From Klebsormidium nitens (lineage: Eukaryota > Plantae > Klebsormidiophyceae), in assembly GCA_000708835.1 (NCBI GenBank), contig DF236955.1, positions 372,001-436,000 on the forward strand: 64,000 nucleotides of DNA, read 5' to 3'. The position numbers were made by a program, and so were the translations under genes. Of the stretch, positions 1 to 49,264 are shown one piece after another (the stretch's first letter is position 1; each line of letters begins with the position of its first letter). A model generated the notes under the pieces. The model worked only from the letters and a program-made list of their open reading frames with translations, made no database searches and had not been told where the DNA came from.

Positions 1-2369
1 CATGCATCCCCGGCAAAAGTTGTGGCGGCAGCCCGGCCACAGGTGGACGAACTCGGTGCCGGGCTGCTCTGCGAAGCACACCTGGCACTCGTGCACCTGG
101 GGAAGTAGAGGGAAGATGAGTTGGTTCATATTCTGCTGTGAAGGATGAGTCAGGAAAAAGTCGTATCCGGGGGGTCGTAAGAGGAAAGACGTGCAGTTTG
201 GTAAGATGCTCGCGAGGACAACTCAGTACGAAAATAATGAGGAGGGCGTGTTGAGAGAGTCCATACATCTCAAGATATCACATAACCAAAATCGCGGGTG
301 GTGAGGGATCAAGGCGACGACACTGTCTGCCTCAACAAGACTTTCAAAGGGAAGCTGGAAAGTCGTTCAGAACGACAGAGTTAAACGAAGTCATGAGACG
401 AAGGGCATTGAACGGGCCCCAAAAACACCTTTTCCTACAAGAGCAGACCCAACATACTTCTGTAGAAGGCTGATCTCAAGGGGTGGGACAGGCGTGATCA
501 ACGTCAAGGCTGACGTCGAGCCAGTCCACTGCCAAAACCCGTGCACGTATAGAGGACATATTTTCTGGCACCAAGCAAGCTGAAGAAAAGTCGGAGGCAC
601 TAACCCCTTTTCTAAACTCCTCCATGGTCTTCTCCTCGTTGTACCGCAGCAGCCGCGACAGCACGTCCTGCACGCCCCACCCCTCCGCCTGCGCCCGCTC
701 GTCATGCTCCGCGCTCTCCTTCCCCTTCCCTTCCGCATTCAACGTGCCCCCAAGCTCGAAACTTTCCCCCAAATCCAGGGTTTCAAACGTCTCCCTGGTC
801 AACCAGTCCGCCCACGAGTACACCACAACCTGACCCTGGTTTTCTTGCCAAACCTCGTCTAAGCCCCGGCACAACCGGCCCAGCTGCGGTCGCGTGAGCC
901 ACACGCTGGACAATGCAAACCGCGGGGGGGAGTGTGACGGGTACGCCGCCGGAAGAGTGCAGGTCAGCCGCAGGGGGGGGAGGTGCTCCAGCGTTAGCGA
1001 CAGTAACCTGCCCCCCTGCCAGGACTTTGCAACCCAGATCTGCCCCCTGGGGGGCTCTTTTCCATTGGTTTCCTTCTCCTCTGCCGCTGCCTCGCTGACC
1101 TCACCAGCTTGTGCGGTGGCGCTTTCGCCCTCTTCTTCTCTGGCAAAGTCGGAGGTTTCGTCTGTGTTTGAAGCCTCTGGTTGACTAAGACTATCTAGCG
1201 TGCTGCTCGGACCGCTGTCCAAAAGGCGCCCCAAGACTTGGATATGGGCGGCAGGCAGGGCAACATGGACCAAAAGCTCAAACGTTGTCGGGTCTGAGCT
1301 TGTTTGCTGAAAATCAGTGGCAAAGATCGACTCGAGGACCATCACCTGTCAGAGGGAAAAGTTGAAGATGAGGGGACTTGAAACGTTACACTTGAGTCTG
1401 GGCTGCAAGTGGGGGCTTTGAAGTCCATGACATTTGGGAACAACTAGGCCATATAGGTCTGGGGTCACGCTCTTGGATTTTGTTCTTCTCAATGATCGTA
1501 GGCTCTGAACTGGAACAGAAAGATGTGACTGCCAGGAAGGTATCTTCAAGTAGTCTTAGATTGATGCTGAAAGGCCGCGTTCCGCCAGCTGTTAGAGCAG
1601 GCTACTTTAGAGCACAACAACGTTACATAGAAAGTAAGATCCATAAGCCTCTTGGCAGCTCCCTTTGCTCTCACGCCCTCACCTCATCTTGCTGCTCCTC
1701 TTCATTCGCCGCCCTTTCCTCTTCTCCCAACATCGGTTCAACCAATCCGCGAATCTCAAAAACAGAATCCCCAGAGTCCTTCTCATAACTTGTACTGGCA
1801 CCCTGGTTCTTCCCTAGGGCCCCTTCTTTTTCCCCAACATTGCTGGCTGCAAGTTCTTCCACCATCTTAACCACCTCCTCCTGCTGACGATCTACTTCAG
1901 CGGACCCCTCGGCTGTATCCTTATCTGTACTGACCGTCAGGCCCTCATCTCCTATACTCTTTTGGCTATCGACGTTTCTCGTCCTCCAACTCTTACTCGC
2001 GCCCCCTCGGTTGCCTCCGCGCCTGCGGGAGCTGTTGCTTCGTTGATAAGGGTTCCCCTGCTCCGCCAGGTGGCCGTTCGTCTGCTCAACTCCTGGCACA
2101 TGTTGCCCCATCAAAGAAGACACACCTGGCACGAACTCAGGGGCCGATGCCCGCAACCCCGCACTCGGAGGCCCGCTTTTATAATTGCCGAGAAGCCTGC
2201 TAGGAGCTGTGTCTCCAGCCCCACCCTCAGCTTTATTGTGGCTGGATTGCTGTGCTTCCAAATCTCCCGCAGCATAAGGGGGGCGTCTGCGGTTGCTTCG
2301 TGGCCTCTGGCCCCAAGTGTCTGACCGTTTGACAGCTGGCTCAGGGGTAGCTCTGTTCGGTTGTGGCAT
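1..2369 (-). CDS. RNF14: RWD-domain RBR (RING-IBR-RING) E3 ubiquitin ligase, RNF14/ARA54-like; 3' end outside the window
   Basis: Phase-consistent exons 2369-1683, 1345-605, 96-<1 with GT/AG borders. The join gives EEQQDE|VMVLESIF (RWD start), the RWD motif LPAAYPSHSPPRF, VVVYSWADWL, then RING1 HECQVCFAEQPGTEFVHLWPGCRHNFCRGCM. Confidence 0.9.
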
Positions 2370-3045: not shown

Positions 3046-6000
3046 ATGGAGTTCTATGGAGAAGAGGGATCTGCGGCAGAGCTGAAGGGTACAACTCTAG
3101 TGGTTGTAAGTGAGACTTCCATCTGCTGGCGCCGAGCAATGTTGCTTGCATCAATGCATAATCTCTGCTTACTTGTCTTACGAGATCTTTAGAATGGTGG
3201 TGGAGAAAAATTGTTGTTCCTTCAGAACGGTGCTGGTGGCGCAAACGTTGGTGGTGATGCAAAGACTTGCAGCATCGGTGTTTGGTTTCGCATGATCAGA
3301 ATTTTGTTGTCCCTGAAACATATGAGCACGTCCTTCTCTGAGAAGGACATTACAGTGCTTGGCAGCTGCAAACTTAACATCCGCAGTTGCCACTTGTGCA
3401 GCTTCTTTCTATATTCCAGTCCCTCTTGCGCCCTCAGCAGTGTTTTTGCTGTTTGTTGAACAGCCACAGATATCTTCTGATTAAATGTTTTGAAGCAGCC
3501 CCATCTTGGATTGCATCTACTTCCTTACTTATACAACCTGCAATTGCAACCCTGAGATGCATAGCAAGTTGGCTGTAATTGGGGATTGAAAGTTTCTTTA
3601 TGCCTCCTTACACGCAGTGATGTTGAAAGCTGGGGTAAGCTGCCATATCACCCTGATCTTGAGAAGACACCAGTCAAAGAAGAGGGCTTATAGTTTGCTC
3701 GCTTTCATGGGAAATGATATTAGGTTCATATAACCATCCTGCAGCCTGCCATCTCGATCGGCAACGTCGGCCAGCTCGCCATCGATCTCATCATCACAGG
3801 CCTTGATCTGAAGCGGATTGGCTTTCTGGAGGAGCCAAATGTCCTCCCCTGTGCTGGGAATGATGCGGTGGGCCTCACCAGCGAGGGGATCATGAGCACA
3901 AGCCTAGAGGGTAAGCTTTATTGATTGGAAAGTCATACTTTATTGTCTCGCAGGACCCAAGATGCAGCTTGAGCACTTCTTATCGCATTTCCGAGGCAAT
4001 TTTGAGGCTTGTTGTTGATTACCATGTGACAGAAAGCAGATGATGAACAGCCTGATCCAAAGCAACTATCGGCACCCTCCTTGCTTAGATCTTCTGCCAT
4101 CTTCTGCCATCTTCTGCCATCTTCTGCCATGAATGACCAATGGAGAAACCAGTTGGTCACTTGATTGCAAGAAGATTGGCCTTGTTTCAAAGTGTCCCTA
4201 GTCACTGCTGAATCTTTTTGCTTATTTTGTTTTGCTCAAGCGCCGAGGTTTGATTACTCTTCATAGCCTGTCAATCAAGCCTCCTCCGTCCAGTTCACTT
4301 TCGACCCTTTGTAAATGCCGCATGGATATCCTTTACGATTGCAGAGACTGAAAGTTGTTATCCCACTCGGTACAGTGTTCCAAAGCTCGTCCGGCTCCAT
4401 CACTATCGTCCAGCAGCGGGCCCCGTACGCCCCCGGCCGGCTCAAAGCGTACGCTCAGAACCTGTCGGAATGGGTGAAGCGCAGCGGCTTTCAGAAGGTC
4501 GTCGTCCTTTCAGGACTGGATGCAGGGAAGCAGCTCGCCGGCCACTCTCTGCCGCAACAGCGGGTGCGCTACACTGCCGCGACAGCTGCTGTAAGCCAAG
4601 ACGAGAGAGCCACATCAGCGGAAACGGGACCCGGATCTGTAGGTCTTGAGCGGAAGTGCGAGGAGTTAGGGTGGCCCATCCTAGAAGATCTGGCGCCATC
4701 AGAGGGGCCGAATGGACACGGGCAGGAGGAAACTTCATCAAGCAATGGGACTTCGTACGGGTCAATGTTTGGCATCGAAGGGTCGGGGGCTACGGGATTG
4801 GAACGGGGTCAATGGTGGGGCCCGGGAAAGGCGTACCAGAGGACTGCTTTTTGGAAAATGTCGGAAGCTCTCAAGGCAAGTGTTTTGATGGTTTCGTCCT
4901 TGAGCAGCTCGCTTGTTTGTTTGAAGACCCAGAAAGGCTAGAGAGTAAACAGTGCGGTGGCGTTCTGCTGCTTTATGCACCAAGTCCGCTCTGGTTCTGC
5001 AGCAATCGTCCACCTCGTTCCCCTTGGGGCTGCAAACCTCACTGAATCAGTTAAGTGGCGCAATATGCTTGAGACCTGCAATCCGATGATATGTGGCAGT
5101 GTTAAAATGCACGACACCGTTCACTGACTCCGACCTGCCAAATGGGTAACATACACAATGACTTGCGACTTCCCACACGATCCAGGCGAACACCTAGTCC
5201 TCCATGCACTTGGATTTATGTCTTTCAAATGTCCGGTAACTTGACACGATGCTTCAAAGAATGCTTGTAACAGACGCGAGCAAGAATTCGCCTCTTCTCT
5301 ACCTTTTCTCTGTCCGGGTAGAGACGCCTTAGAAAGACGTCAGGACAGGTCCGGCGACATCATTTCTGCCTGGAACCGTTCTGCTGACTCCAGGCGGGAG
5401 TTGGAGCAAGCAAGCCAGCTGAGGCTGCCAAGCACAGGTGGTCGCTGCTCGGATCCCGTTGGAGAGACGGGTGGCCCTTGTGCTGCCGGTTCGATCGCTA
5501 AACGTCCGTGAGGAAGAGAGCTTTCAACATGCATCCTTGCCGTCGCTCACCGCTCAAGTTGCTAACATTCCGAACAGACTGTTTTTTCGTGCAGGAGCAG
5601 GGCGTGAGCGTGCTGTCGCTGCTTCTGCTGTGCTCAGAGGGCGACAACGTCCCGGACGGGCTCGCCCTGGCGACCGCGCTTGACTCGCTTCTAGGACTCC
5701 GTGGCGATCAAAAACCAGGTGACTAGACCTGAAGACGTCAGACGGATTGTTCCTGACGTCTGGAAATCACTTTTAGCCGTTTCGTGCAAGCTTTCGCCTT
5801 CATCAATTAGTCCGAGATGAGCTACTCCAACGTTTACCCGGTGCCTAAAGCCATTTTCCAGATGGGCTGCTTGCTTTTTCCCAGTCTAGTGACTAGGACA
5901 TGAAGTCCGTCCGCGGATCCATTGCCACAGTAATGAGCTGGTGACGTAAACCGACTCACTCCCATTGCAGAGAGCATGGAAAGGAGAAGAGCGATGAAAG

Positions 6001-20771: not shown

Positions 20772-23763
20772 GCTTGGAACACTGAGATTGTAGATGAGGG
20801 TCATCGATAACCAAGTATCTGGCCGTTCAAACCCGCTCGTTCCCGCATTGTACATTGAAGGGCGATGCGGCAGTGCAAGCGAGCGAGTGTACAGGGTAAT
20901 CAGTTTTGGTAGGCTATAAGTCAAATGGTTGTCATGTTACAAGTATCTGAATAGCAGACAGCTAAGCTCTGGAAACAGGAGCAACACGGTCAGACAAGCA
21001 GGCTTACGAGCAGTCAGCGAGAATCTAAACGGTTCTTCTTTGATTGAGTGATTCGTTCACCAATGTCATCGTATCAGGTGTTTCTAAACGTCCGGTCACG
21101 TGTAGCTGCTTGAAGGACGAGTCCGGATTGGTCTTTGTCATTGCCTTGAAGTTTTATTGGACGACTTCAGTGCATTGGGTAGGCTACATTGGTTTTGGGG
21201 CAGTCACGAATGCAAGATTGCACGTTGAACTGTCCGAGATCTCACAACGGCGTTGTCGAGTGCATCGTTTGAGCAACTTCGTTCCCGGACGTTTCCAGTC
21301 CTTGACTGTTATGCCATATATACGCTGTCTGATAGAGGCGAAAAATTCCTAGATTCAGAACCAAGGAAGACTGGTTCTCATTGAGATGATTGGCTTGATG
21401 ACAACCATGTGGCCGACATCTTAACCACTTTCTTCCAACAGTGTGCAAGTCTCTAAGCCACTCCCGTCTTGGTCGTATCAGAACTCATGGGGCACTGGAT
21501 TCGGATCTTCGTTATGTTGCTACACTAGACGTCATCAATTCTCAAGAGTCGATGAAAATGTCCCGCATGGCCGTACAACTCGTCCTTCATATCATTGTGT
21601 TTTAACTGGGGAAACACATTTTCGTATCTAATCAGTCCACGTCGCGGGGTCGGATGATGCATGACGCGGGACAAGCTTTCATATCAATCGGCCGATTGAC
21701 ACTCGGAGTTCGAATCCTCTCAGTCTTACTACAAGGTACGCTAGCCCCTTCAGAGACCATCTGTGCTACGTTGGCACCGCCTACTCGAAGTCCATCATCT
21801 CCGCATCTTCTGCTGAATGTTTGCCTGCGCTGAGCACGTCCGGCCAACGTCTAATCTCTATCTGCTCATGTCTCTTGACGCGTGCTACTCTGTTTCAAGG
21901 CCGATCATGACAGCATTGTCATCGGTGTTCAGAGCTCACACTTAAAAGGTTCTCGGGATAGCAGGACAAGCTACTGACGGTAGGTCGAGAAATGGAAGTA
22001 CTGCATTCGATCGGGATGCCGTTAATTGTCCAACCGGTAGAGCACTGAGTAGCTGTGAACTTCTTAGAGTAAGCCCGGCGCGACCCCGCCGCATGACGGT
22101 GCCACTGCTTCACAAGGAAAAACCGTATCCTGAGTGGTAGTCCTATGTCGGCCGAGCTACCTCGGATTATCAGTCTCGTCTTGCAGCCAGTCGCATCCAA
22201 AGCAGACGTTCCCGCTCAGTCTTGTCATCCTACGATTTAATGAGTTTCGAAACAACCGCCTGAGATACTAGTCTGCTAGCTAATCTCCAAGACAACACAG
22301 GCACTCCCTCGGCGTCCAAGCTAGCATGGGTACACCAGTGGCCAAGCCTTCAAGTTCAAGCGTAGAGCACACCAGTGCTGAGGCGTAGGTGCACATCTCC
22401 TGTGCCATTGGGCTAGCTGAGATAGAGTGTCAAAGGTTGCCTTAGGTAGGATAGCTAGATAAATAGTATCTCAGTACCATTGTTCGAACTCGGTCGGATC
22501 GTGTGTTGACACTCTTCGGCCCCATGGCGCAAGCTACGGTCCTTATAATTGGCTTGCCCTTTCAAGGGGAACCCATAGGGTTCCATCACGAACGAAACAT
22601 CTGCTAGCAGGTGAACCATTTTTCAGACCGTAATTCCTAGACTGGCCGTTGGCTTAGCCAAAATTCGATTCGGAGGGTTTAGTGCCATCTGTCTTGGCCG
22701 GACATTGCTAATTGTCGTTCACGCATGGCGCGCCATGCATGACACTAATTTTCAATATCAGAAAGAAGCGCCTGACGCTCCGCACTTTGCGGGCCGAGGT
22801 CCGCAATTATCGGTACAGTCATGGCCCGTCGGTCTGTAACGACGTGCTTGGCTGGGATCGACCTGCTACGCCAGCTGGTATGTTTGGGTTACTTGTCGGG
22901 TTAAGCGTCGATATGTACGAGGTTAATCGGATGCGGGGTTAGGATTCGTAACCAGTTTATGAATGATGCCAGGGAATGTCACCGACAGTGTGTGCCGTCG
23001 CATGCATGCATGTGGCCTGCCGCCTGACCAACTGACGATGAAAATTGGATTGCGCGCTGCGCTTTCCTGCCCTTTCCCTTTGCCCCGCCGTGACGCTAAA
23101 TTCAAAGTCAACTCGTGCAAACGGCACCTGATCGACGGCAAGCCACAGTCCCCCGCAGGGGGACTGATCGGGTCACAGCTTGTTGAAGTATGAATGAATT
23201 GCAAACCCCGAAGCTTTTGCCAGTGCGCATCTGCGCAAGGACCAGCGCAGTCACCGTCTTTGCTGGCGTGCGGTTGATGGGACCTTCGGCCGAGAATCAC
23301 GCTCAGTCGTCGGATTGACTTCCAGAAAGTTCGCAAGGGCTATGGGTCACTTTTGCGACGTCCGATAAGATCACATGGTTCCACATGGTCATAGCCACAT
23401 GCCGGCCGGCAGGTGTGCATTGTGGATAAGCTCTAGCTAGCTCCACATTTGGAGTTTGGAATGCTGTCAATTCCAGCAGCAGGGTCGGAAACCCACTTCA
23501 ATGGTACCTACTCGTTCATAGAAGAAACATTGCAGGACGGTGTAGAGAGTCCGCTATGCTCTGCTTGTGACAAAACACAGCTCATGTTGACACCTGATGA
23601 ATGGTGGTAATTTCAGAAGATACAACAATCACTCTAGTGAGCTTTTTTAAACGCAGAATGCCGAATGTATTGGCTCTAGCATTGTGAAGTAGGTGCATAC
23701 TCCCGCACCCATGGGCGCACAGCCGGGCATTGAATACCCCCACCACCGGAACTGAAATGGACA

Positions 23764-26700
23764 ATGGCTGCCTCTAGTGGCAATCCCGACAAAATGGCGC
23801 AAGGGCCGCAGAGTGCCGCAATGCCAGCTGGCGAAGAGCCAAAAGCGGCCCCCCAGAAGCGGGACCTCATGCTCGAGATTTGGACGCTGGTTGCGATCGG
23901 CGTGCTGGTCCATGGGGACTGCGGTTCCTACCGGGGTGTGCACTTTGCGGTGCACTTGCAAGGCCTGCAGCACAAGAAGCGAATCTTAGCGTTGAACCCG
24001 ACTAAGGAGGGCTTTCCTGAGGAGAAGGTGAAAACGCTCATGAGCGAGCCTTTCAAGCTTTTCTATGAGGGGCCGGAGGGGGAAAGTGAAGGGAGCCGGA
24101 AACTGGTGATGACGTGTCCCAGCAGCCTGAAGCTGGCGGCAGATTGGAAGGCGCGTGGGTTTGTTGGAGTGCCGAAGACGGGCGCGAACGATGCCTTTGG
24201 AAGCCCCATCTTCTTCTTTCACACTCTGAATGTAAGCGGTTATCTTACTCTTCTTTTTGGCTTTCCTTGGGAAATGCTATGCCAGGGGTTGAAAAGCTTT
24301 TCTCCCGTCTGTGGCATCGCAAGACTGGCAACAATAATTGAGGTAAAGTTGTCTAAGGCGGCACAATTGTTGGCAATTGCAGCTCACAGGGCTTGATCAC
24401 GATTTGCATTGACTTTCACCAGAATACGATGGCAGGTGTACTTTTGTGCACCTCTTCCCAGGGCAGTCGTTGGCACTGATAAATTCAGTTGAATCATTTG
24501 CTCTGCATTGGGCAATTGTTGCTTAGTAGGTTGTCCCCATTACTCCTCATGTATGGGAAAGTTGCGGGGGTTTGCAGGTTGAGTTAAGAGCTTGGAAAGG
24601 TGCATGGTACCAAAAGTATCCCGCCAATTGAAGCAAGCTTACAGAGTACAGCACGCACATGCTCAGCATGACTATCTGTGGTGTGGGTAAAACTGCTTTA
24701 CCTGTGGGTAAACCCGCTTTACCACTACTTCCTCAATCTGATGACGTGTTATTTTCTTCAACTGGCTTGCATCACCAGTTCCTGGTCTGTACTATTTCCC
24801 CCCTTCCAATAAACATGTCTAGGTGACACTGTCCCTCTGCTCGTTTCGCAGGGCAAGCCAAACCGCAACGGGCCTTTAGTCTTGGGCTCGATACGCGACG
24901 CCGTGACCGAGAAGATCCGCTGGAACCCCGAGACTGGCTCCTCAATTCACGGGACACTCGAGCAGCTTAACCAGAAGTTTGAGGAAGCGGTGGTCCGGTT
25001 GCCTAGGGCATCCAAGAAAGAGGGTGCCAAGCCACAGGTGTGGGTGCAGAGGACCGGGCAGAAAAGGGGGGGGAGTGCGGTGAACAAGCTGAAGAGAAAG
25101 TGGGCAGGCGAATTGGGGGGCTTGAAGAAACGGGTCTGGGAGGGGGGGAGTGCGCTGAGGCGGGACCTGAAGAGAAAGAGGGGCCAAGGGGATGCATTGG
25201 AAGGAAGAAGCAAGGTTATGCAGGGGGCGAACGACAAAGTGTTAGGAAGCAGTCAGGGGAGGAAGATGGGGCAGACGCAACCGAACACTACAGGAGGAGG
25301 GGCGGGCCTGAGCAAGGGCCCAGTCGCGTCGAAAAAAGAAGGGACTGAGAGCACAACAAAATTGCAGCATGGATTGAAAGCCTCCAGTGCGAAAGCTGAG
25401 GGCTTGAAACACGAGAAGAAAGTGGTGGGCAGTGCGCCGGAAGTTGGAAGGGAGCCTCAGGAGCGCTGTGGTCTGGAGGGCAACGCAGGGGGTGGGCCTG
25501 TGGACGAAGAGAAAGAGCGTTCAGCGATTGGCAGCTTGAAGCAGGCTTCAGAGAAGCAGAAGCAGGAGGGAAAGGACTCCGAGAGTGAAGAGGACGATGG
25601 TGGAAATGATGGATCAGAGGTGCAAAAAAGCGGAGTACAGGGTGACAACGCTGGGGTCAAAGATACTCATGGTGGGGGCACCGGTGGGCCTAGCCAGGCT
25701 AACAGGGAGCGCGTAAACAATGGCCAGGCCATTCAGGCGGAGGTGGGCAGCGGAAAGCAAGCTGGCGATCGGGGAATTGGATTGACTGCGGTTGGGGGCG
25801 AGAGAGAGCGGGCAAAGCCTGCGATGCTGGTGAAAGGGCCAGGGCTGAGGCTTCGGATATCTCTGAAAGATCTGCCAGGGCCGGTGGCGAAGGTGCCGCG
25901 TCACTCAGGGTCGGTTGCACCGCAGGGGCAGAAGCCTGCGGGTTTGGAGGGGACAACGGAACAGTTTGGAAGCGGTGTTGTTGGGGCGAAATTGAAGTCG
26001 GAGGGGGAGAAAGATGAGGTGGTGGAATGCAGAGGAAGGTTGCCTGGCACAGCGGCAGAGCGAGGCAGCGGGGGGGTTGGGGAGAGCTCGGTCAGGGGGG
26101 ATGGAAGCCCAGTGGAACCTTCAGAGGCGATCAAGGGACAAGCCGAGGCAAAACGGAGGCCAGCAACCGAGAAAGGCCACAGGGCGGAAGGCGGGACGAA
26201 CGGGGAGAGATCAGTTCTCAGCAGCGAAGCCTTAGGAACGAGCAGATCCGACATTGTGTCGGCGCGGGAAGGGTCCGAGCCCGATGAGATCGGGCAGCCT
26301 CAAACTCCGGATAGTCACACAGCTGAAGCGAGGAAAGCAAGAGAAAAGGATCGCAGGGCTGCCTTCCCATTAGAGCCGCTCGAAGATGCGGAGGCTGTCC
26401 GAGAGCTGGTGCGCAAGTCCGCTCGGACAAAGCTGTTTGAGATGCAGCTGGTCACGGGAAGGTACCGCGACGTCGAGCGCGCTTTGCTGGAGTTGCTGAA
26501 AGCGCCGGACTGCCGCCCCGAGTTCAAAGTGGAGCTCAAGCTAGCGCTGCGGCAGATGCGCGAGGGGGACCTCCTGGCCCCTCCTCGCTGGGAGCGACTC
26601 GAAGAAGCGGCGGAGAAAGAGTGCCCAAAAGGCTTTGAGGAGATGCGGGCGGAGCGAAGTCGCAGCGGGGGGGCAGGTAGTCTGCAACTCGGTAGCATCT

Positions 26701-29700
26701 TTGCTGACGGGGCTCGTGACGTCATTGCTGGCGTTACCGTGCTGGGCCCAGCAGAGAAGATGCGGACGTGGCGGGAGGCGAGGGTTCGGAAGATGACGTC
26801 AGCACGCGTGGCGCCCGTTTTCGTGCCCAGCAGGGGGCGGGCTGACCTTGCGTACCTCAACTTTGAGGCGGAGTGCGCTTTGGGACCAAGGAGGGTAGGG
26901 GAGACGCCGGTGGTGGTGTTCGTGAGGGGCGACGAATTAGAAGCGTACCGTGCGCGGTGGCCGGAGCTGCTGTTTGCCATTCTGCCAAGGTGGGCTGACC
27001 AATCTAGTTTGTGATTGTTGGATGTCGATAGAAGCATGAACGGATGAAACTCAGCAGAGTGAAGTGTGGGGTGGAACGACTTGCTGAATATGTCGGCTGT
27101 CGGGTCCAGTCCCTTACACTGAGATCGGCTCTGATTGGTTTTGCGAGTTCCAACCCGTTGCTTTCCCGGACCTACATGCAAAAGTCCTTCATCGTGTCAA
27201 CTTTATGCTTCGCTTTCAAGACAGAATGAGTGACTTCAGATTAGCAGACTTTGCGCTTCAGTCCAACGATGAAGCGTTACTAGGTATCCACCATTGGATG
27301 ATAATCAGTTCCACCGACTCGCGATTAGACGCTGTTCGACGTCAAACGATTGCTGGGTTCTCTTTCGTACGAGCACTTTGCAGCATTGGCGCGCCTCTCG
27401 TCTGAGATCCAATCAAGCAGCCGCTGATTGGAGCAGCTGCATTTCTACAGCTCCGCAAAACCAACGACGCGTTTCCTTTGGCCCCAACTCTCACTTCCTT
27501 CGAAAGCAACTCTTTCCAACTAACTACCTCAAACACCACTTTCCTGCAGCGGGCAAGGTTGTAGCAGCATCGGCGGAGTCCGCAACACGATGAAGCGCTT
27601 TGCCGCAGCGGCGGGCCTCTCGCACTACTGGGAGATCGACGACAACGTGATGGGCTTCGTGGCCGGCCCGGAGAGGCGCCACGTGGCAATGTGGGAGGCG
27701 CTGTTATATGGGCAGCGGCAGATGCTGGAGTGTGCGGGGGAACGGGTCGGGGTGTTCGGCTTCGAGTGCTGGAAAGGACTGGACGACATTCCAGAGGACG
27801 GGGACCTGTTTCTGAAAGCGAACTCAGCGTCCATCTACAAGGTGAGGTGCAATGGAATAGTCGTTACCAGGAATAGTTTTGTGGGTGCGTTTCGAGATGT
27901 AGTACCTCGGTCGTGCCCCTACTGTGTGGATTCTAAACATTGCTCTCAGCGGATAGCGTCTGGCCATACGAAGCAGATTATGCTGTGATGAGCCAGCAAA
28001 ACTGTCCTCTTCGCTAGCTTGCAAACCGTCAAAGCGAAGGTGAAAAACTAGTTGCAACTTGACTTATTAGTCTCGATGCTGATAAGCTCTTCGAGAAGCA
28101 TTGGCATTGTCTATCACGGCTTTCTTGGTCGATAGTGGTAAAAATCGAATCTCATGTTGGAAGTCAGGTCTTCAGGATCAGTTGCTTCTATTTTTGTCAA
28201 TCAAGGTAGGCGATTTTGCTCGATTGGTTTATGCTCGTCTTCGTGCCTCGCTTTCCGGGCGGTCCCTGCTAAATTTGTCAGGTTCATGGCATTGTTGTTG
28301 ACGAGCAAAGCGTCAGAATCCATTGGTCGCAAAAGACTTGATCAGAAATACTTACTATCCTCAGGTGCGGTTGATTGATTGCCACGTCACCGCGGGCATG
28401 CGCTACCGCCCGTTCCTGCACAGCAAGGAGGACATCCTGTTCAACGCGGAGTTCACCTGCCGGGGCGGCCGCACCCTCAAGAGCCTCTGGTTCCGCTACG
28501 TGCGCTCGTTCTGGTCCCAGGGCGGCTGCCACGATGCCCGGAACCCTGTCCAAATTACCAGCGTATCTGGGGTAGGGGGAGCGGACAATCTGGCAAGATC
28601 GGCGGGGACAGGGGCGGGAGAAGAGGGCCTCTTGGGTGCCAACGCGTCTGGGCCTGTCGAAGGCTCAGAAAAGACGGTTTTGGAGGTGCGGTTAGACACG
28701 GCTCCGGAAAAGGCGGCAGCCGTTTCTGCACTGTTCCCGGCAGTCGGGCCGAGGCCACAGTTTCTGGGGGTCAACAGACCGGGACCGTTGAGCGGAGCGC
28801 AAGGTGGCTGGAGTATTCCCAAAGTGGACAGCGGCGTGGCGGGCTCTGATCGCCTCCACGCTTCTGCTGCGGGTTCGTTGGAGCCACGCAAACGTCTTGG
28901 ACCTCTAAACATTCCCGCATCGGTCCCAGAAACCGAGATTCCGGGTCCCCCGAGCGAGTATCAGCCAGCGGGAAGAGTTCAGAGGAAGGTCTCTGCTCGG
29001 GGCGGCGAACTTGGCTTCGGGGCGGCGTCTCCAGTAGCGACCCGGAGAACGAAATGCAGAAGCGCCTGCGATTCAGTCGAAGACGGCTCTGCAAATTTTG
29101 TGCAACCTGTCCCCGGCGCGCAAACAAGGCCGCTAGGTCCGGATCTACCTGTTCCGCCTGGCACCCCTCCACACCAAAGCTCCCCGGATACCCCCCCCCA
29201 AAGCAGTGCGCCGGAATACCCGCCTGGCTTGAGCTCGCCAGGCACCCCCCCGCGAGGTGGATCCTGCTCTAACAATCCGTCCTCCCCTCGTGAAACTGTT
29301 AGTATTCCCCCGAAATGGGGTGTGCCAAAGGCACTCGAAGAAGAAAGCGACGGAAGCGATGATTCAGCAGGAGAGTCAGAGTCAGAAGCCGAATCCGAGG
29401 CCCATTTTGGAAGCCCGCCTCGGTCTTTTCCTGCTCCTCTAAGGGAAGCGCCCGCGCCTTTGACCCCACCGCCTGTGACCCCGAGGAAACAGAAAAAGCG
29501 ACCGAGCGTAAAAGCCGAGCGATCGAGGCCGGCCTGGATGGAGCGGAGTAAAGACGATGAAGGTAAGCCGTTGATTGGAAAATTTTGTAGGCGTGAGACA
29601 GTAGAAGTAGTGGGAAACGCGATCTCATCTTGTTGACTTCGTTGAGAAGTCGGCCAGCCTGCCCGAAAGAAGTACTACGACGTCTTGGCAGGCTTTGTGC

Positions 29701-31019
29701 GCCCCTACTTTTACCATCCCTACTCCAGAGCTTTTTCTGGAATCACTCTCCTGTTGCGATTCTTGGTTTCAACTCCCGAAGCTTCTCTGCTTGTGCTGTT
29801 CCAACAGATTGTAATCGCATTTTTATTTTTCAAATTGCGTACCGATTCTGCTTGTTGTCACCGAACGTTGATTCATATGCTGCGCAATCCGGCGATTTGA
29901 TCCTTAGCCCTCGCCTTGCCCTTTTACCGTGATGTTCGATTACCGTGCTCCTTCTCAGGAGGCTCAAACCTTCACTCGTGGCAAACAAGTTGTGCTGCGA
30001 AGCGTAGCTGGTGCATCCGCTGAGTCGTTTATATCAAGTTCAGTTCTATGGGGTCGGCCAAAGGCAAATCCAAGCCGGGTCGCACTCCGTCATCGCCCTA
30101 CCAGCAGGCCTACCGCCCCACCGCTCAACGTTCCTCTGCTATGTTCGTCAGGTATCTGGTTGACGTCACTTGACTCATTGGTCTTTTGAAGTTTACTTTC
30201 CTCTTATGTTCTGTTCTGCTCAGTTTAATGTCAATGCGGCCTTATCTCTATTCCACCCGTGCAGATCTATTGGGGCCGGCCGTGGCAATGACGGGTGCAG
30301 AGCTGGCCGCGGCGCTGCAGAGTGACGTCACGCTGACGGAGGCCTACGTCAAGGAGCAGCGGGCCCTGCGGAAGCGCGGCCGGCTGGGCGGGCTGTCAGG
30401 GAAGCTGAAGGCCGCCGAGAAGCAGCGGCAACTGTTAGCGAAGCTAGATAAGCTCCTCGAGATGGGGACGTACAGCATCGTGAAACGGAAGAAAGTCAAG
30501 CGGAGAGCGGTGCAAGAGGATCACGATCTATGGGAGTGCCCGGGAGACATGTTCAGCGGACATGCGCAGGGGAAAACTAGAGCGAAGATTAAATTGGCCG
30601 AGGCGGCGGACATAACGGTTATGAAAGATGAGGAGCTGCGGGAAACGCACCGGGAGATCATGGCCGTCGCGGATAGGCTGGGGAAGAAGGGCCGCCTCCG
30701 AAAGAGCCCGTTCGGGGGGCAGGTGATCTTGCGCCTCGCGCGGCTGCTCGCGTCGCGTAATGCGCGTGTGCACCAGCAGGCCGCGCGCACGCTTTCGGAC
30801 TTGGCGGGGCGGTGTGACGTCACGGGGTGCGCGAGACGGGTTGAGGGGTTCAGGAAAGCGGCGCGAGACGCTTTGGGGTTTCTGGTCGACCACTGGGAGC
30901 TGTTTAGGGACGAGCGGTTTGGCATGCGCCTGATCGAGGTTAACAAACTGTTCCGCCTGGGCTTGATAATGTTTCGTAGGCGTGTACTGACGGGTGGATT
31001 CGATGCAAATGTAAGCTGA
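23764..31019 (+). CDS. Large multidomain protein: tentative 2OG-Fe(II) dioxygenase-like N-domain, low-complexity linker, GREB1/JGT-like (TAGT) glycosyltransferase, Pro/Ser linker, ARM-like helical tail
   Basis: Exons 23764-24231, 24852-26989, 27550-27841, 28365-29562, 30044-30151 (least certain) and 30265-31019 are all phase-consistent: 4959 nt, 1652 aa. GT-A motifs PVFVPSRGRA, ELEAYRARWPELLFAILP, IGGVRNTMKRFA, YWEIDDNV, KEDILFN, SQGG. Confidence 0.85.
24682..24723. repeat. Tandem 21-bp unit, each copy a GGTAAA-N5-TTTACC inverted repeat
   Basis: TGTGGGTAAAACTGCTTTACC followed by TGTGGGTAAACCCGCTTTACC, in intron 1 of the glycosyltransferase gene. Confidence 0.85.
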
Positions 31020-47838: not shown

Positions 47839-49264
47839 ATGGACTCCCTTATTCCTGGTCTCCCTGACGATGTGGCGAAGCTGTGTCTGGCTAGGATACC
47901 TCTGCATCTGTACACAACTGTCCGCTCCGTGTGTCGCTCATGGGGGCAGTGGCTTATCGATGAAACAGGGGAGTTGGCAAAGATGCGGCGAGATGCTGGG
48001 CTGAAGGGCGATCAACTCTTCCTTCTCGTATGCAAGAGCATGTACTCTGAAACACAGGATGGTCAGGAAAATTTGGGGAACTACTCGCACCTCCCATGGC
48101 TCTGGAATGGAAGGCGCTATGCAAAGTTTTCATACCGTCTGGCGAGGGTGGAGTTTGATGCAGCGGGCCAGATTGTCATGGAGTATGTGGGGGACGAGTT
48201 GACCTGCAAGGTGAGCTGAAAGGAGCTGGGCAAGAATCTTCGGATGCTTGATGCCAAGCAGAGAAGCACTGATCGAAAGCATGGTGCTATTTTCCAGTCT
48301 TGTAGGTGGAAATATTTGGGACTATAGTGAGTCTGCTTTACAGTCTGATCGCAGGCTTTCCATTCCACTTGACAACTTTCACCAGCATTTGATATTCCCA
48401 CACTACAAACAATGAGGTGATGTTTTCTCAAAGGTTCTGTGCCCGTCCGCGACAGAGTACGGTGTCACACCGTATTCACATACTCGAACCTTTGTGCAGC
48501 TGCCGTTTCCGTATGCAAAAGCCTTCGAGACGATGATCTCCATTGGCCGCAACCTATTCCTGTTCCGCATTGGACGAGATGTTTGGCGGTGTGACACGGC
48601 CACCGGTCGATGGCAGCAGGTTGCCACCCGGAACTGGTATGAAAAGAGATTTGCATGGGGGGTGATCAAGGGTCAGCTGTACATCGCGGGGGGCCAAAGC
48701 CACACCGCAGGAGGCACGTCGATCTCTGCGGAGGTGTATGATCTCGAGAAGGATAAGTGGTCGCCCTTGCCAACCATGCCTCAAGTTCGCGGAAGAAGCC
48801 AGGGTTACATCACGGAAGAAGGCAAGTTTTTGGTTTTCGGGACGGATTCTCGAAGCAACATCGAGCCGGCGGCCCTAATTTATGATCCGGATGCGATCGC
48901 CAGCGGGTGGTCGATACTAGAGAATTTCTGGCCGTTTGGGGGAAGGTTGGTTGGATCAGCTGTTGCGGGGAAACAGTTGTATGTAGCTTCCGAGCACGGA
49001 CCCGCAGAGTTCGAGCTCAGGCAGTTCAACGGGAAGGCTTGGAGGTCTTTGGCTTGTCGAGGGGGGGAGGGAGTTTTGAATCATTGTGATGCGTTGATTG
49101 CGCTTGATGGGGGACTCTTGAGCGCAGGATGGTCAGGCGATAGCAGTTGGTTGAGAGCCCCACTAGCAGGTTCGGTCATGCGGAGCGGACTTGCCAAGCT
49201 GCGACATCTTGAAAGATGGACGCCCGCTGGTGAGGAGATCATTGTAGCAGCTGTGGGTGCTTGA
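47839..49264 (+). CDS. F-box/kelch-repeat protein
   Basis: Exons 47839-48210 and 48500-49264 in frame. MDSLIPGLPDDVAKLCLARIP F-box; kelch motifs GQLYIAGG...SAEVYDLEKDKWSPLPTMP. TTTTAGGG telo-box about 40 nt upstream. Confidence 0.93.

Follow-up and report, generated by a model that had tools for sequence, protein, structure and literature searches.

Whether the streptophyte alga Klebsormidium nitens possesses an active glycosyltransferase of the TAGT family, and what such an enzyme would modify, is the question raised by a gene on the + strand of a 64,000-nucleotide stretch of contig DF236955.1 (in the following the window, meaning the whole stretch that was analysed). TAGT enzymes are DNA hypermodifiers in phages and trypanosomes, and a protein O-GlcNAc (O-linked N-acetylglucosamine) transferase in GREB1; other eukaryotic roles of the family are, to our knowledge, essentially unexplored. 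The family itself was reportedly defined by Iyer and colleagues in 2013 in NAR. The analysis of the algal locus points with good confidence to a real, expressed five-exon gene that encodes a catalytically active TAGT domain together with protein parts that would direct location and acceptor choice.

Gene structure, expression and selection

Read on the + strand, the pieces 26814-26989, 27550-27841 and 28365-28526 translate in phase into one spliced peptide, from PVFVPSRGRADLAYLNF to SQGG, which matches exactly the peptide given in a preliminary description of this DNA. The division of the domain among three exons, as proposed there, is equally seen in the joints 26989>27550 and 27841>28365, which are present in contigs of all four public runs consulted. 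The extent proposed at that time was right with respect to splicing and too narrow in scope, as the gene has five exons, of which the three pieces cover only the last part of exon 2, exon 3 entirely and the first part of exon 4. This gene spans 23764-31019 (+) and encodes 1,616 amino acids (aa) followed by a TGA stop.

The gene model has been derived by comparing 5,951 nucleotides (nt) of the gene region with assembled contigs of these four runs, which originate from four studies. Besides the two joints within the domain, 24231>24852 is found in contigs of four of four runs, each of the three joined forms being delimited by GT..AG. Equally in all four runs, a contig loose end occurs after 29562, and its continuation maps uniquely to 30265, which locates exon 5. 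The record gives no run type; as the GT..AG joints are intron-less, the contigs are taken to derive from mRNA. In run X1, the depth of intronic contigs is 3-6, as compared with ~340 on exons; these low-depth contigs (window 24270-24469, 27024-27466 and 28080-28287) are probably unspliced precursor or DNA carry-over. The gene is real, expressed, single-copy and host-encoded, with the following features.

23764..24231, + strand: exon 1, aa 1-156, with the start codon and most of the conserved N-terminal region; open reading frame (ORF) with a GTAAGC donor
24852..26989, + strand: exon 2, aa 157-869, with the end of the N-terminal region, linker, helical region and first third of the TAGT domain
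Subparts of exon 2: basic clusters resembling a nuclear localization signal (NLS-like), aa 237-268; G/K/E/S-rich linker, aa ~271-655; conserved helical region, aa 656-805; TAGT domain from aa ~806
26811..28529, + strand: predicted TAGT domain of PF20691 type, aa ~810-1021, coding pieces 26811-26989, 27550-27841 and 28365-28529
26990..27549, + strand: intron 2, 560 nt, GT..AG, phase 2, within the TAGT domain
27550..27841, + strand: exon 3, aa 869-966, core of the TAGT domain with R880 (27581-27583) and D899-D900-N901 (27638-27646)
27842..28364, + strand: intron 3, 523 nt, GT..AG, phase 0, within the TAGT domain
28365..29562, + strand: exon 4, aa 967-1366, with the last third of the TAGT domain and, behind it, low-complexity sequence rich in P/S/G
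Motifs in exon 4: E988-D989 (28428-28433), F992 and G1019-G1020-C1021 (to ~28529)
30265..31019, + strand: exon 5, aa 1366-1616 followed by the stop codon; encodes the C-terminal domain, which is all-alpha, conserved and includes the cluster KRKKVKRR (30483-30506)

Intron 2 splits the codon of Ser869 (AG/C, phase 2) and intron 3 is located between Lys966 and Val967 (phase 0), in a window that is intron-rich, has ~52% GC and contains GT-AG introns of ~500-600 nt. A short upstream ORF (23757-23777; ATG, five further codons and a stop) runs across the main start codon in a different frame.

Relatives of this gene are few. A word search with exon 2 (among proteins of 392-1,246 aa) retrieved one relative ORF only, P0001, which is 80% identical and is encoded on a 21.6-kb contig, L001. 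The gene on this contig is a syntenic orthologue: DNA identity is 68-94% over the exons and flanking genes, and the introns can no longer be aligned; exon 3 shows 92% DNA and 95% protein identity, and exon 1 is 81% identical to the orthologue P0033. Two more distant loci, L002 (with its duplicate L003) and L004, were found by a search of the whole library. The positions and phases of both domain-internal introns are kept in L001, L002 (equally in L003) and L004, and the resulting algal family has four members at 48-95% identity. A phmmer search of the whole library with exon 3 gave only five matches, two close exon fragments, the repeat artefacts P0004 and P0005, and the protein P0006; the links lead to P0002, P0003 and P0006. 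No protein with the spliced domain and no full-length annotated product was found in the two protein libraries searched (one of these searches being limited to 392-1,246 aa), and a metagenome scan with the family alignment of exon 3 recovered no further relative. Enzyme domains encoded on short exons can be missing from the protein collections that are searched.

Between the window and L001, the ratio of nonsynonymous to synonymous substitution rates (dN/dS) is lowest in the TAGT domain (0.08-0.10), compared with 0.24 for exon 1, 0.19 for the first 110 codons of exon 2, 0.28 for the pre-TAGT helical part and 0.65 for the low-complexity linker. The TAGT domain is under strong purifying selection, more so than any other part of this expressed gene. 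At L001 14120-14524, the P/S-rich tail of exon 4 shifts its reading frame relative to the window, which could reflect a low-complexity indel or an extra small intron.

Relationship to known TAGT domains and the active site

By homology, the central ~215 residues of the protein (aa ~806-1025) are assigned to the TAGT family, as a domain cut by two introns. A profile of 14 gp27-type phage genes (~252 aa) from a scan of IMG/VR matches, with its positions 5-184, aa 811-1006 of the spliced 1,616-aa protein at 48.8 bits (expectation value, E, 4.9e-14 in a set of 1,895 six-frame targets); none of 5,000 shuffles exceeds 6.0 bits. This significant match, with the three exons in collinear order, agrees with the TAGT assignment made earlier from the letters. 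A 272-aa spliced construct (window 26700-28600, aa ~773-1044) reaches 54.8 bits with the same profile, and the single exon pieces 10.8, 23.7 and 13.4 bits at the collinear profile positions 5-55, 63-97 and 147-187. In BLASTP, the spliced core is 22-24% identical to phage TAGTs over ~200 aa (E 4e-16). Equally in the reverse direction, a hidden Markov model (HMM) of the four spliced algal-family domains recognizes gp27 of Nonlabens phage P12024L with 50.8 bits over HMM positions 62-238, spanning the three exons (best of 2,000 shuffles, 8.9). Gp27 itself scores 76 bits with Pfam TAGT, and its gene lies between a Tet_JBP gene, which immediately precedes it, and a methyltransferase. Among the IMG/VR genes of gp27 type, five glycosyltransferases were scanned and all pass Pfam TAGT (65-87 bits); the upstream ORFs, five of which were scanned as well, are all Pfam Tet_JBP (78-91 bits).

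Contiguous pieces have been analysed as well. The tail of exon 2 matches positions 2-49 of Pfam TAGT (PF20691) at 19 bits (E 1.4e-3), the gathering cut-off of this family being 27.5 bits; the equivalent tail scores above the cut-off in L002 (30.6 bits) and below it in L004 (26.9 bits), and exon 3 alone and the head of exon 4 alone give no TAGT match in Pfam. The look-alikes of exon 3 in the ESM Atlas are TAGT clusters (0.94, 187 shared features), and the sole match of exon 3 in PHROGs is phrog_842, 'beta-glucosyl-HMC-alpha-glucosyltransferase' (HMC, hydroxymethylcytosine; E 0.059). A tblastn search with exon 3 against 50,697 phage genomes yielded nothing significant; its one meaningful weak match (E=2) was the TAGT gene of P12024L, which later became the bridge between algal exon 3 and the phage TAGTs. 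The sea-anemone protein P0006, matched by exon 3, carries Pfam TAGT at 35.8 bits and matches gp27 (E 2e-5). Sequence searches of the PDB with exon 3 and gp27 found no TAGT structure.

The likeness to the phage P12024L gp27-type enzymes amounts to collinear homology along the whole ~190-residue core (22-24% identity), with the motifs vvV..E...Y...P, ilP, R-N, YW..DD, RYR...KED..F and GG in common. On the other hand, the phage enzymes are stand-alone proteins of ~252 aa encoded behind a Tet_JBP gene, often together with a methyltransferase, whereas the algal domain is part of a host protein of 1,616 aa, whose gene contains introns and has no dioxygenase near it within the window; the algal domain has DDN for DDD and four family-specific invariant cysteines. 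Far more distant are the T2/T6-type beta-glucosyl-HMC-alpha-glucosyltransferases and their homologues in Aeromonas, Vibrio and Tenacibaculum phages, which have a Pfam TAGT core and against which the family HMM scores ~0-2.5 bits. These enzymes, which possess a GT-A fold and form a sister group to GT2 (PMC13216743), have R / W..DDN / NED in common with the algal domain, the DDN metal motif being identical, and differ by an N-terminal extension of ~110 aa, an insert before the Arg motif and the transfer of a second glucose onto glucosyl-5-hydroxymethylcytosine.

A eukaryotic counterpart is found in a cnidarian TAGT-like family (P0006-P0032), to which the algal family aligns in hhalign with 96% probability (E 3.6e-9). 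The blocks LPq.grGIG..R.i.K....l..YW.IDDD....F and ALL.GQR are common to both; the cnidarian family differs by its dynamin-type GTPase partner and by its C-terminal third, including the ED region, which aligns poorly. Most of its members remain below the Pfam TAGT cut-off. These proteins of ~1,150-1,270 aa combine an N-terminal dynamin-like GTPase with a C-terminal TAGT-like domain and are mostly metagenomic, with two cnidarian members named; P0006 (Actinostola; locus L005) resembles a fusion of two of these units within a single gene model.

Phage DNA glycosyltransferases possess a conserved GT-A set R...DDD...EDY/F, which is common to JGT of T. cruzi (bioRxiv 10.1101/2023.12.21.572611). In the alga, R880, D899-D900-N901 and E988-D989 align with the corresponding motifs of Pfam-positive phage TAGTs and are invariant in all four members of the algal family except for N901S in L002; the DD pair and the ED motif, described as intact at the outset, are indeed both present and invariant. 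By analogy with GT-A enzymes, the DD(N) motif would be the place where the domain binds a divalent metal and a uridine diphosphate (UDP)-sugar, Arg880 would lie on the nucleotide, and the acidic ED pair would activate the acceptor hydroxyl. Since these motifs are present and the domain is under purifying selection, it is in all likelihood an active TAGT-type glycosyltransferase.

Could the domain alternatively be a catalytically dead TAGT fold, retained for binding or as a scaffold? At the third position of DDD, the acidic residue is replaced by Asn (Ser in L002), and the aromatic residue directly after ED is not in its published place, the alga having KEDILF (F992) for EDY/F. A DDN form is, however, normal in strong phage TAGTs, as five phage proteins with Pfam TAGT scores of 131-210 bits have MDDN at the same place, so that the replacement of the third Asp is no defect, and a displaced aromatic residue is equally found in gp27 (KEDRDF). 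With R, DD and ED invariant in four of four members at 48-95% identity, and a domain dN/dS of 0.08, the lowest in the protein, a pseudoenzyme is most improbable.

Four cysteines in the TAGT domain, C830, C941, C972 and C1021, are invariant throughout the algal family (four of four members), and phage TAGTs lack them at the aligned positions. The pair C972-H973 is present in all four members, and a His after C1021 (H1022) only in the window and L001. The four cysteines could form disulfides or a metal site.

Flanking protein parts and genomic neighbourhood

The N-terminal ~270 residues (window 23764-25660) are conserved (dN/dS 0.19-0.24). This region matches no Pfam family, its best Atlas match (0.77) is unnamed, and the word search retrieved the orthologue only; an AlphaFold2 (AF2) model has a predicted local distance difference test (pLDDT) value of 35.6 and is unusable. 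A reading of the N-terminus as a 2-oxoglutarate and Fe(II)-dependent (2OG-Fe(II)) dioxygenase finds no support in Pfam, in the Atlas, in the orthologue as only relative, in the unusable AF2 model or in the Tet_JBP profile, and the proposed HxD would lie ~18 structured residues into the conserved region, which appears too early for a double-stranded beta-helix. Equally, no Pfam match to a TET/JBP dioxygenase was obtained on the N-terminal exon or the other exons, and a profile of ten phage Tet_JBP proteins found nothing in the protein or in the six frames of the 64-kb window and L001 (best E 3.3).

The hydrophobic peak of the protein lies in this N-terminal region, at aa 35-53 (LMLEIWTLVAIGVLVHGDC, window 23866-23922), which has a Kyte-Doolittle value of 1.60 over 19 residues and follows K32-R33. 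A type II membrane-anchored enzyme of the secretory pathway can thereby be envisaged, in which aa 35-53 would be the signal anchor and a Fringe-like GT-A domain in the lumen of the endoplasmic reticulum (ER) or Golgi would act on glycans or secretory proteins. Fringe-type GT-A enzymes are typically Golgi type II proteins. The value of 1.60 is at the usual threshold, AF2 places a helix at residues 30-48, and disulfides formed by the four family-invariant cysteines, which phage homologues lack, would suit such a location. Against it, a conserved Glu is present in the segment, and clear hydrophobicity extends over 15 residues only; this hydrophobic core has only two conservative substitutions between orthologues (I45L and V47I), while simple membrane anchors tend to diverge. 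Lumenal proteins do not typically contain, as this one does, more than 700 residues of low-complexity sequence that is K/R/E-rich and has several NLS-like clusters, and the known TAGT members, phage glycosyltransferases, JGT and GREB1, are all soluble and nucleo-cytoplasmic (PMC7968844). A secretory enzyme is thus very unlikely.

NLS-like basic clusters are located at aa 237-268, 1343-1349 and 1439-1446. The C-terminal domain (window 30265-31016, aa 1366-1616, ~250 aa) is 84% identical in L001 and 33% identical over 234 aa in L004; it shows weak Arm/HEAT hints in Pfam (E 0.04) and the Atlas, and its AF2 model is all-helical at low confidence (pLDDT 49.9). Pfam scans of the exons detected no DNA-binding domain.

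In the surroundings of the gene, ORFs at 479-1345 (-), 4315-4938 (+) and 48494-49261 (+) match RWD, PAC2 and Kelch repeats. The neighbours are ordinary host genes, and neither a mobile element nor a DNA-modification cluster is apparent around the gene. A transposon or viral insertion is rejected in view of the single copy in the window, the spliceosomal introns and the synteny with L001, which includes the flanking genes.

Acceptor choice in comparison with GREB1 and JGT

Which acceptor the algal enzyme might use has been approached by comparison with the eukaryotic TAGT proteins GREB1 and JGT. Like GREB1 and GREB1L, the algal protein is a large multidomain eukaryotic protein with a glycosyltransferase domain of the TAGT family. 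In GREB1, an N-terminal Zn-binding domain and a circularly permuted, inactive superfamily II (SF-II) helicase precede the C-terminal glycosyltransferase, which O-GlcNAcylates a protein, estrogen receptor alpha (ER-alpha), rather than DNA; among the many eukaryotic and protist lineages listed as having GREB1-like proteins, Viridiplantae are not found (PMC7968844). Pfam scans of all five algal exons gave no GREB1, helicase or Zn-finger match, and the glycosyltransferase is central in the alga (aa 806-1025 of 1,616) as compared with C-terminal in GREB1. As the Zn-binding and permuted helicase modules are undetected and the glycosyltransferase is central, the algal gene is not a GREB1 orthologue; the two proteins, compared by domain content, share this domain only. 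JGT, compared by description, is a eukaryotic nuclear-type TAGT relative with the R...DDD...ED set (bioRxiv 10.1101/2023.12.21.572611). It acts downstream of the thymidine hydroxylases JBP1/JBP2, and no such partner is seen in the algal 64-kb window.

Tentatively, a protein hydroxyl in the nucleo-cytoplasm, in the style of GREB1, is preferred as acceptor to an oxidised DNA base, because a TET/JBP hydroxylase is found neither in the protein nor beside the gene. A protein or other acceptor is equally suggested by the lack of a detected DNA-binding domain, by a scaffold-like architecture with a helical interaction domain and by the GREB1 precedent (PMC7968844). In this proposal, the N-terminal region, the disordered basic and acidic linkers with their NLS-like clusters and the C-terminal helical domain would make the enzyme part of a complex that is nucleo-cytoplasmic and probably nuclear, and the parts outside the TAGT domain would choose the acceptor.

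The opposite choice would be an enzyme that transfers a sugar onto 5-hydroxymethylcytosine (5hmC) or 5-hydroxymethyluracil (5hmU) in nuclear DNA, as phage TAGTs and JGT do, with the hydroxylase encoded elsewhere. The closest detectable relatives, phage glycosyltransferases directly downstream of Tet_JBP genes, speak for such a DNA-base glycosyltransferase, the NLS-like basic clusters fit a nuclear protein, and JGT likewise works with separately encoded hydroxylases (PMC7968844). In the protein and the 64-kb window, however, no TET/JBP-like domain is detected, Pfam recognizes no DNA-binding domain, and no publication connecting Klebsormidium with TET/JBP or 5hmC came up in a literature search. 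A role in DNA modification is judged unlikely.

Several points weigh against a nucleo-cytoplasmic, protein-modifying TAGT enzyme. The contiguous pieces of the window itself score below the Pfam gathering value (19 versus 27.5 bits), and the GT-A fold of the domain is predicted from its homologues. The segment aa 35-53 could be a signal anchor that would place the enzyme in the secretory pathway. Furthermore, the preference for a protein acceptor depends on a hydroxylase not being found within 64 kb, and the nearest relatives are DNA-acting phage glycosyltransferases encoded behind TET/JBP genes, which favours a DNA over a protein acceptor.

In the most far-reaching case, which we consider unlikely, this streptophyte alga would glycosylate its own nuclear 5hmC or 5hmU with an enzyme derived from a TET-associated phage or virus glycosyltransferase, now carried on a large nuclear scaffold protein, and with the hydroxylase located elsewhere. 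If true, base-J-like or phage-like DNA hypermodification would occur in the green lineage. The expressed and strongly constrained TAGT domain resides in a close algal relative of land plants, in an architecture unlike that of GREB1. It offers a concrete, testable entry point to the questions whether a second intracellular glycosylation system exists in the green lineage beside the SPY/SEC-type enzymes, and whether sugar-modified DNA bases are part of its biology.

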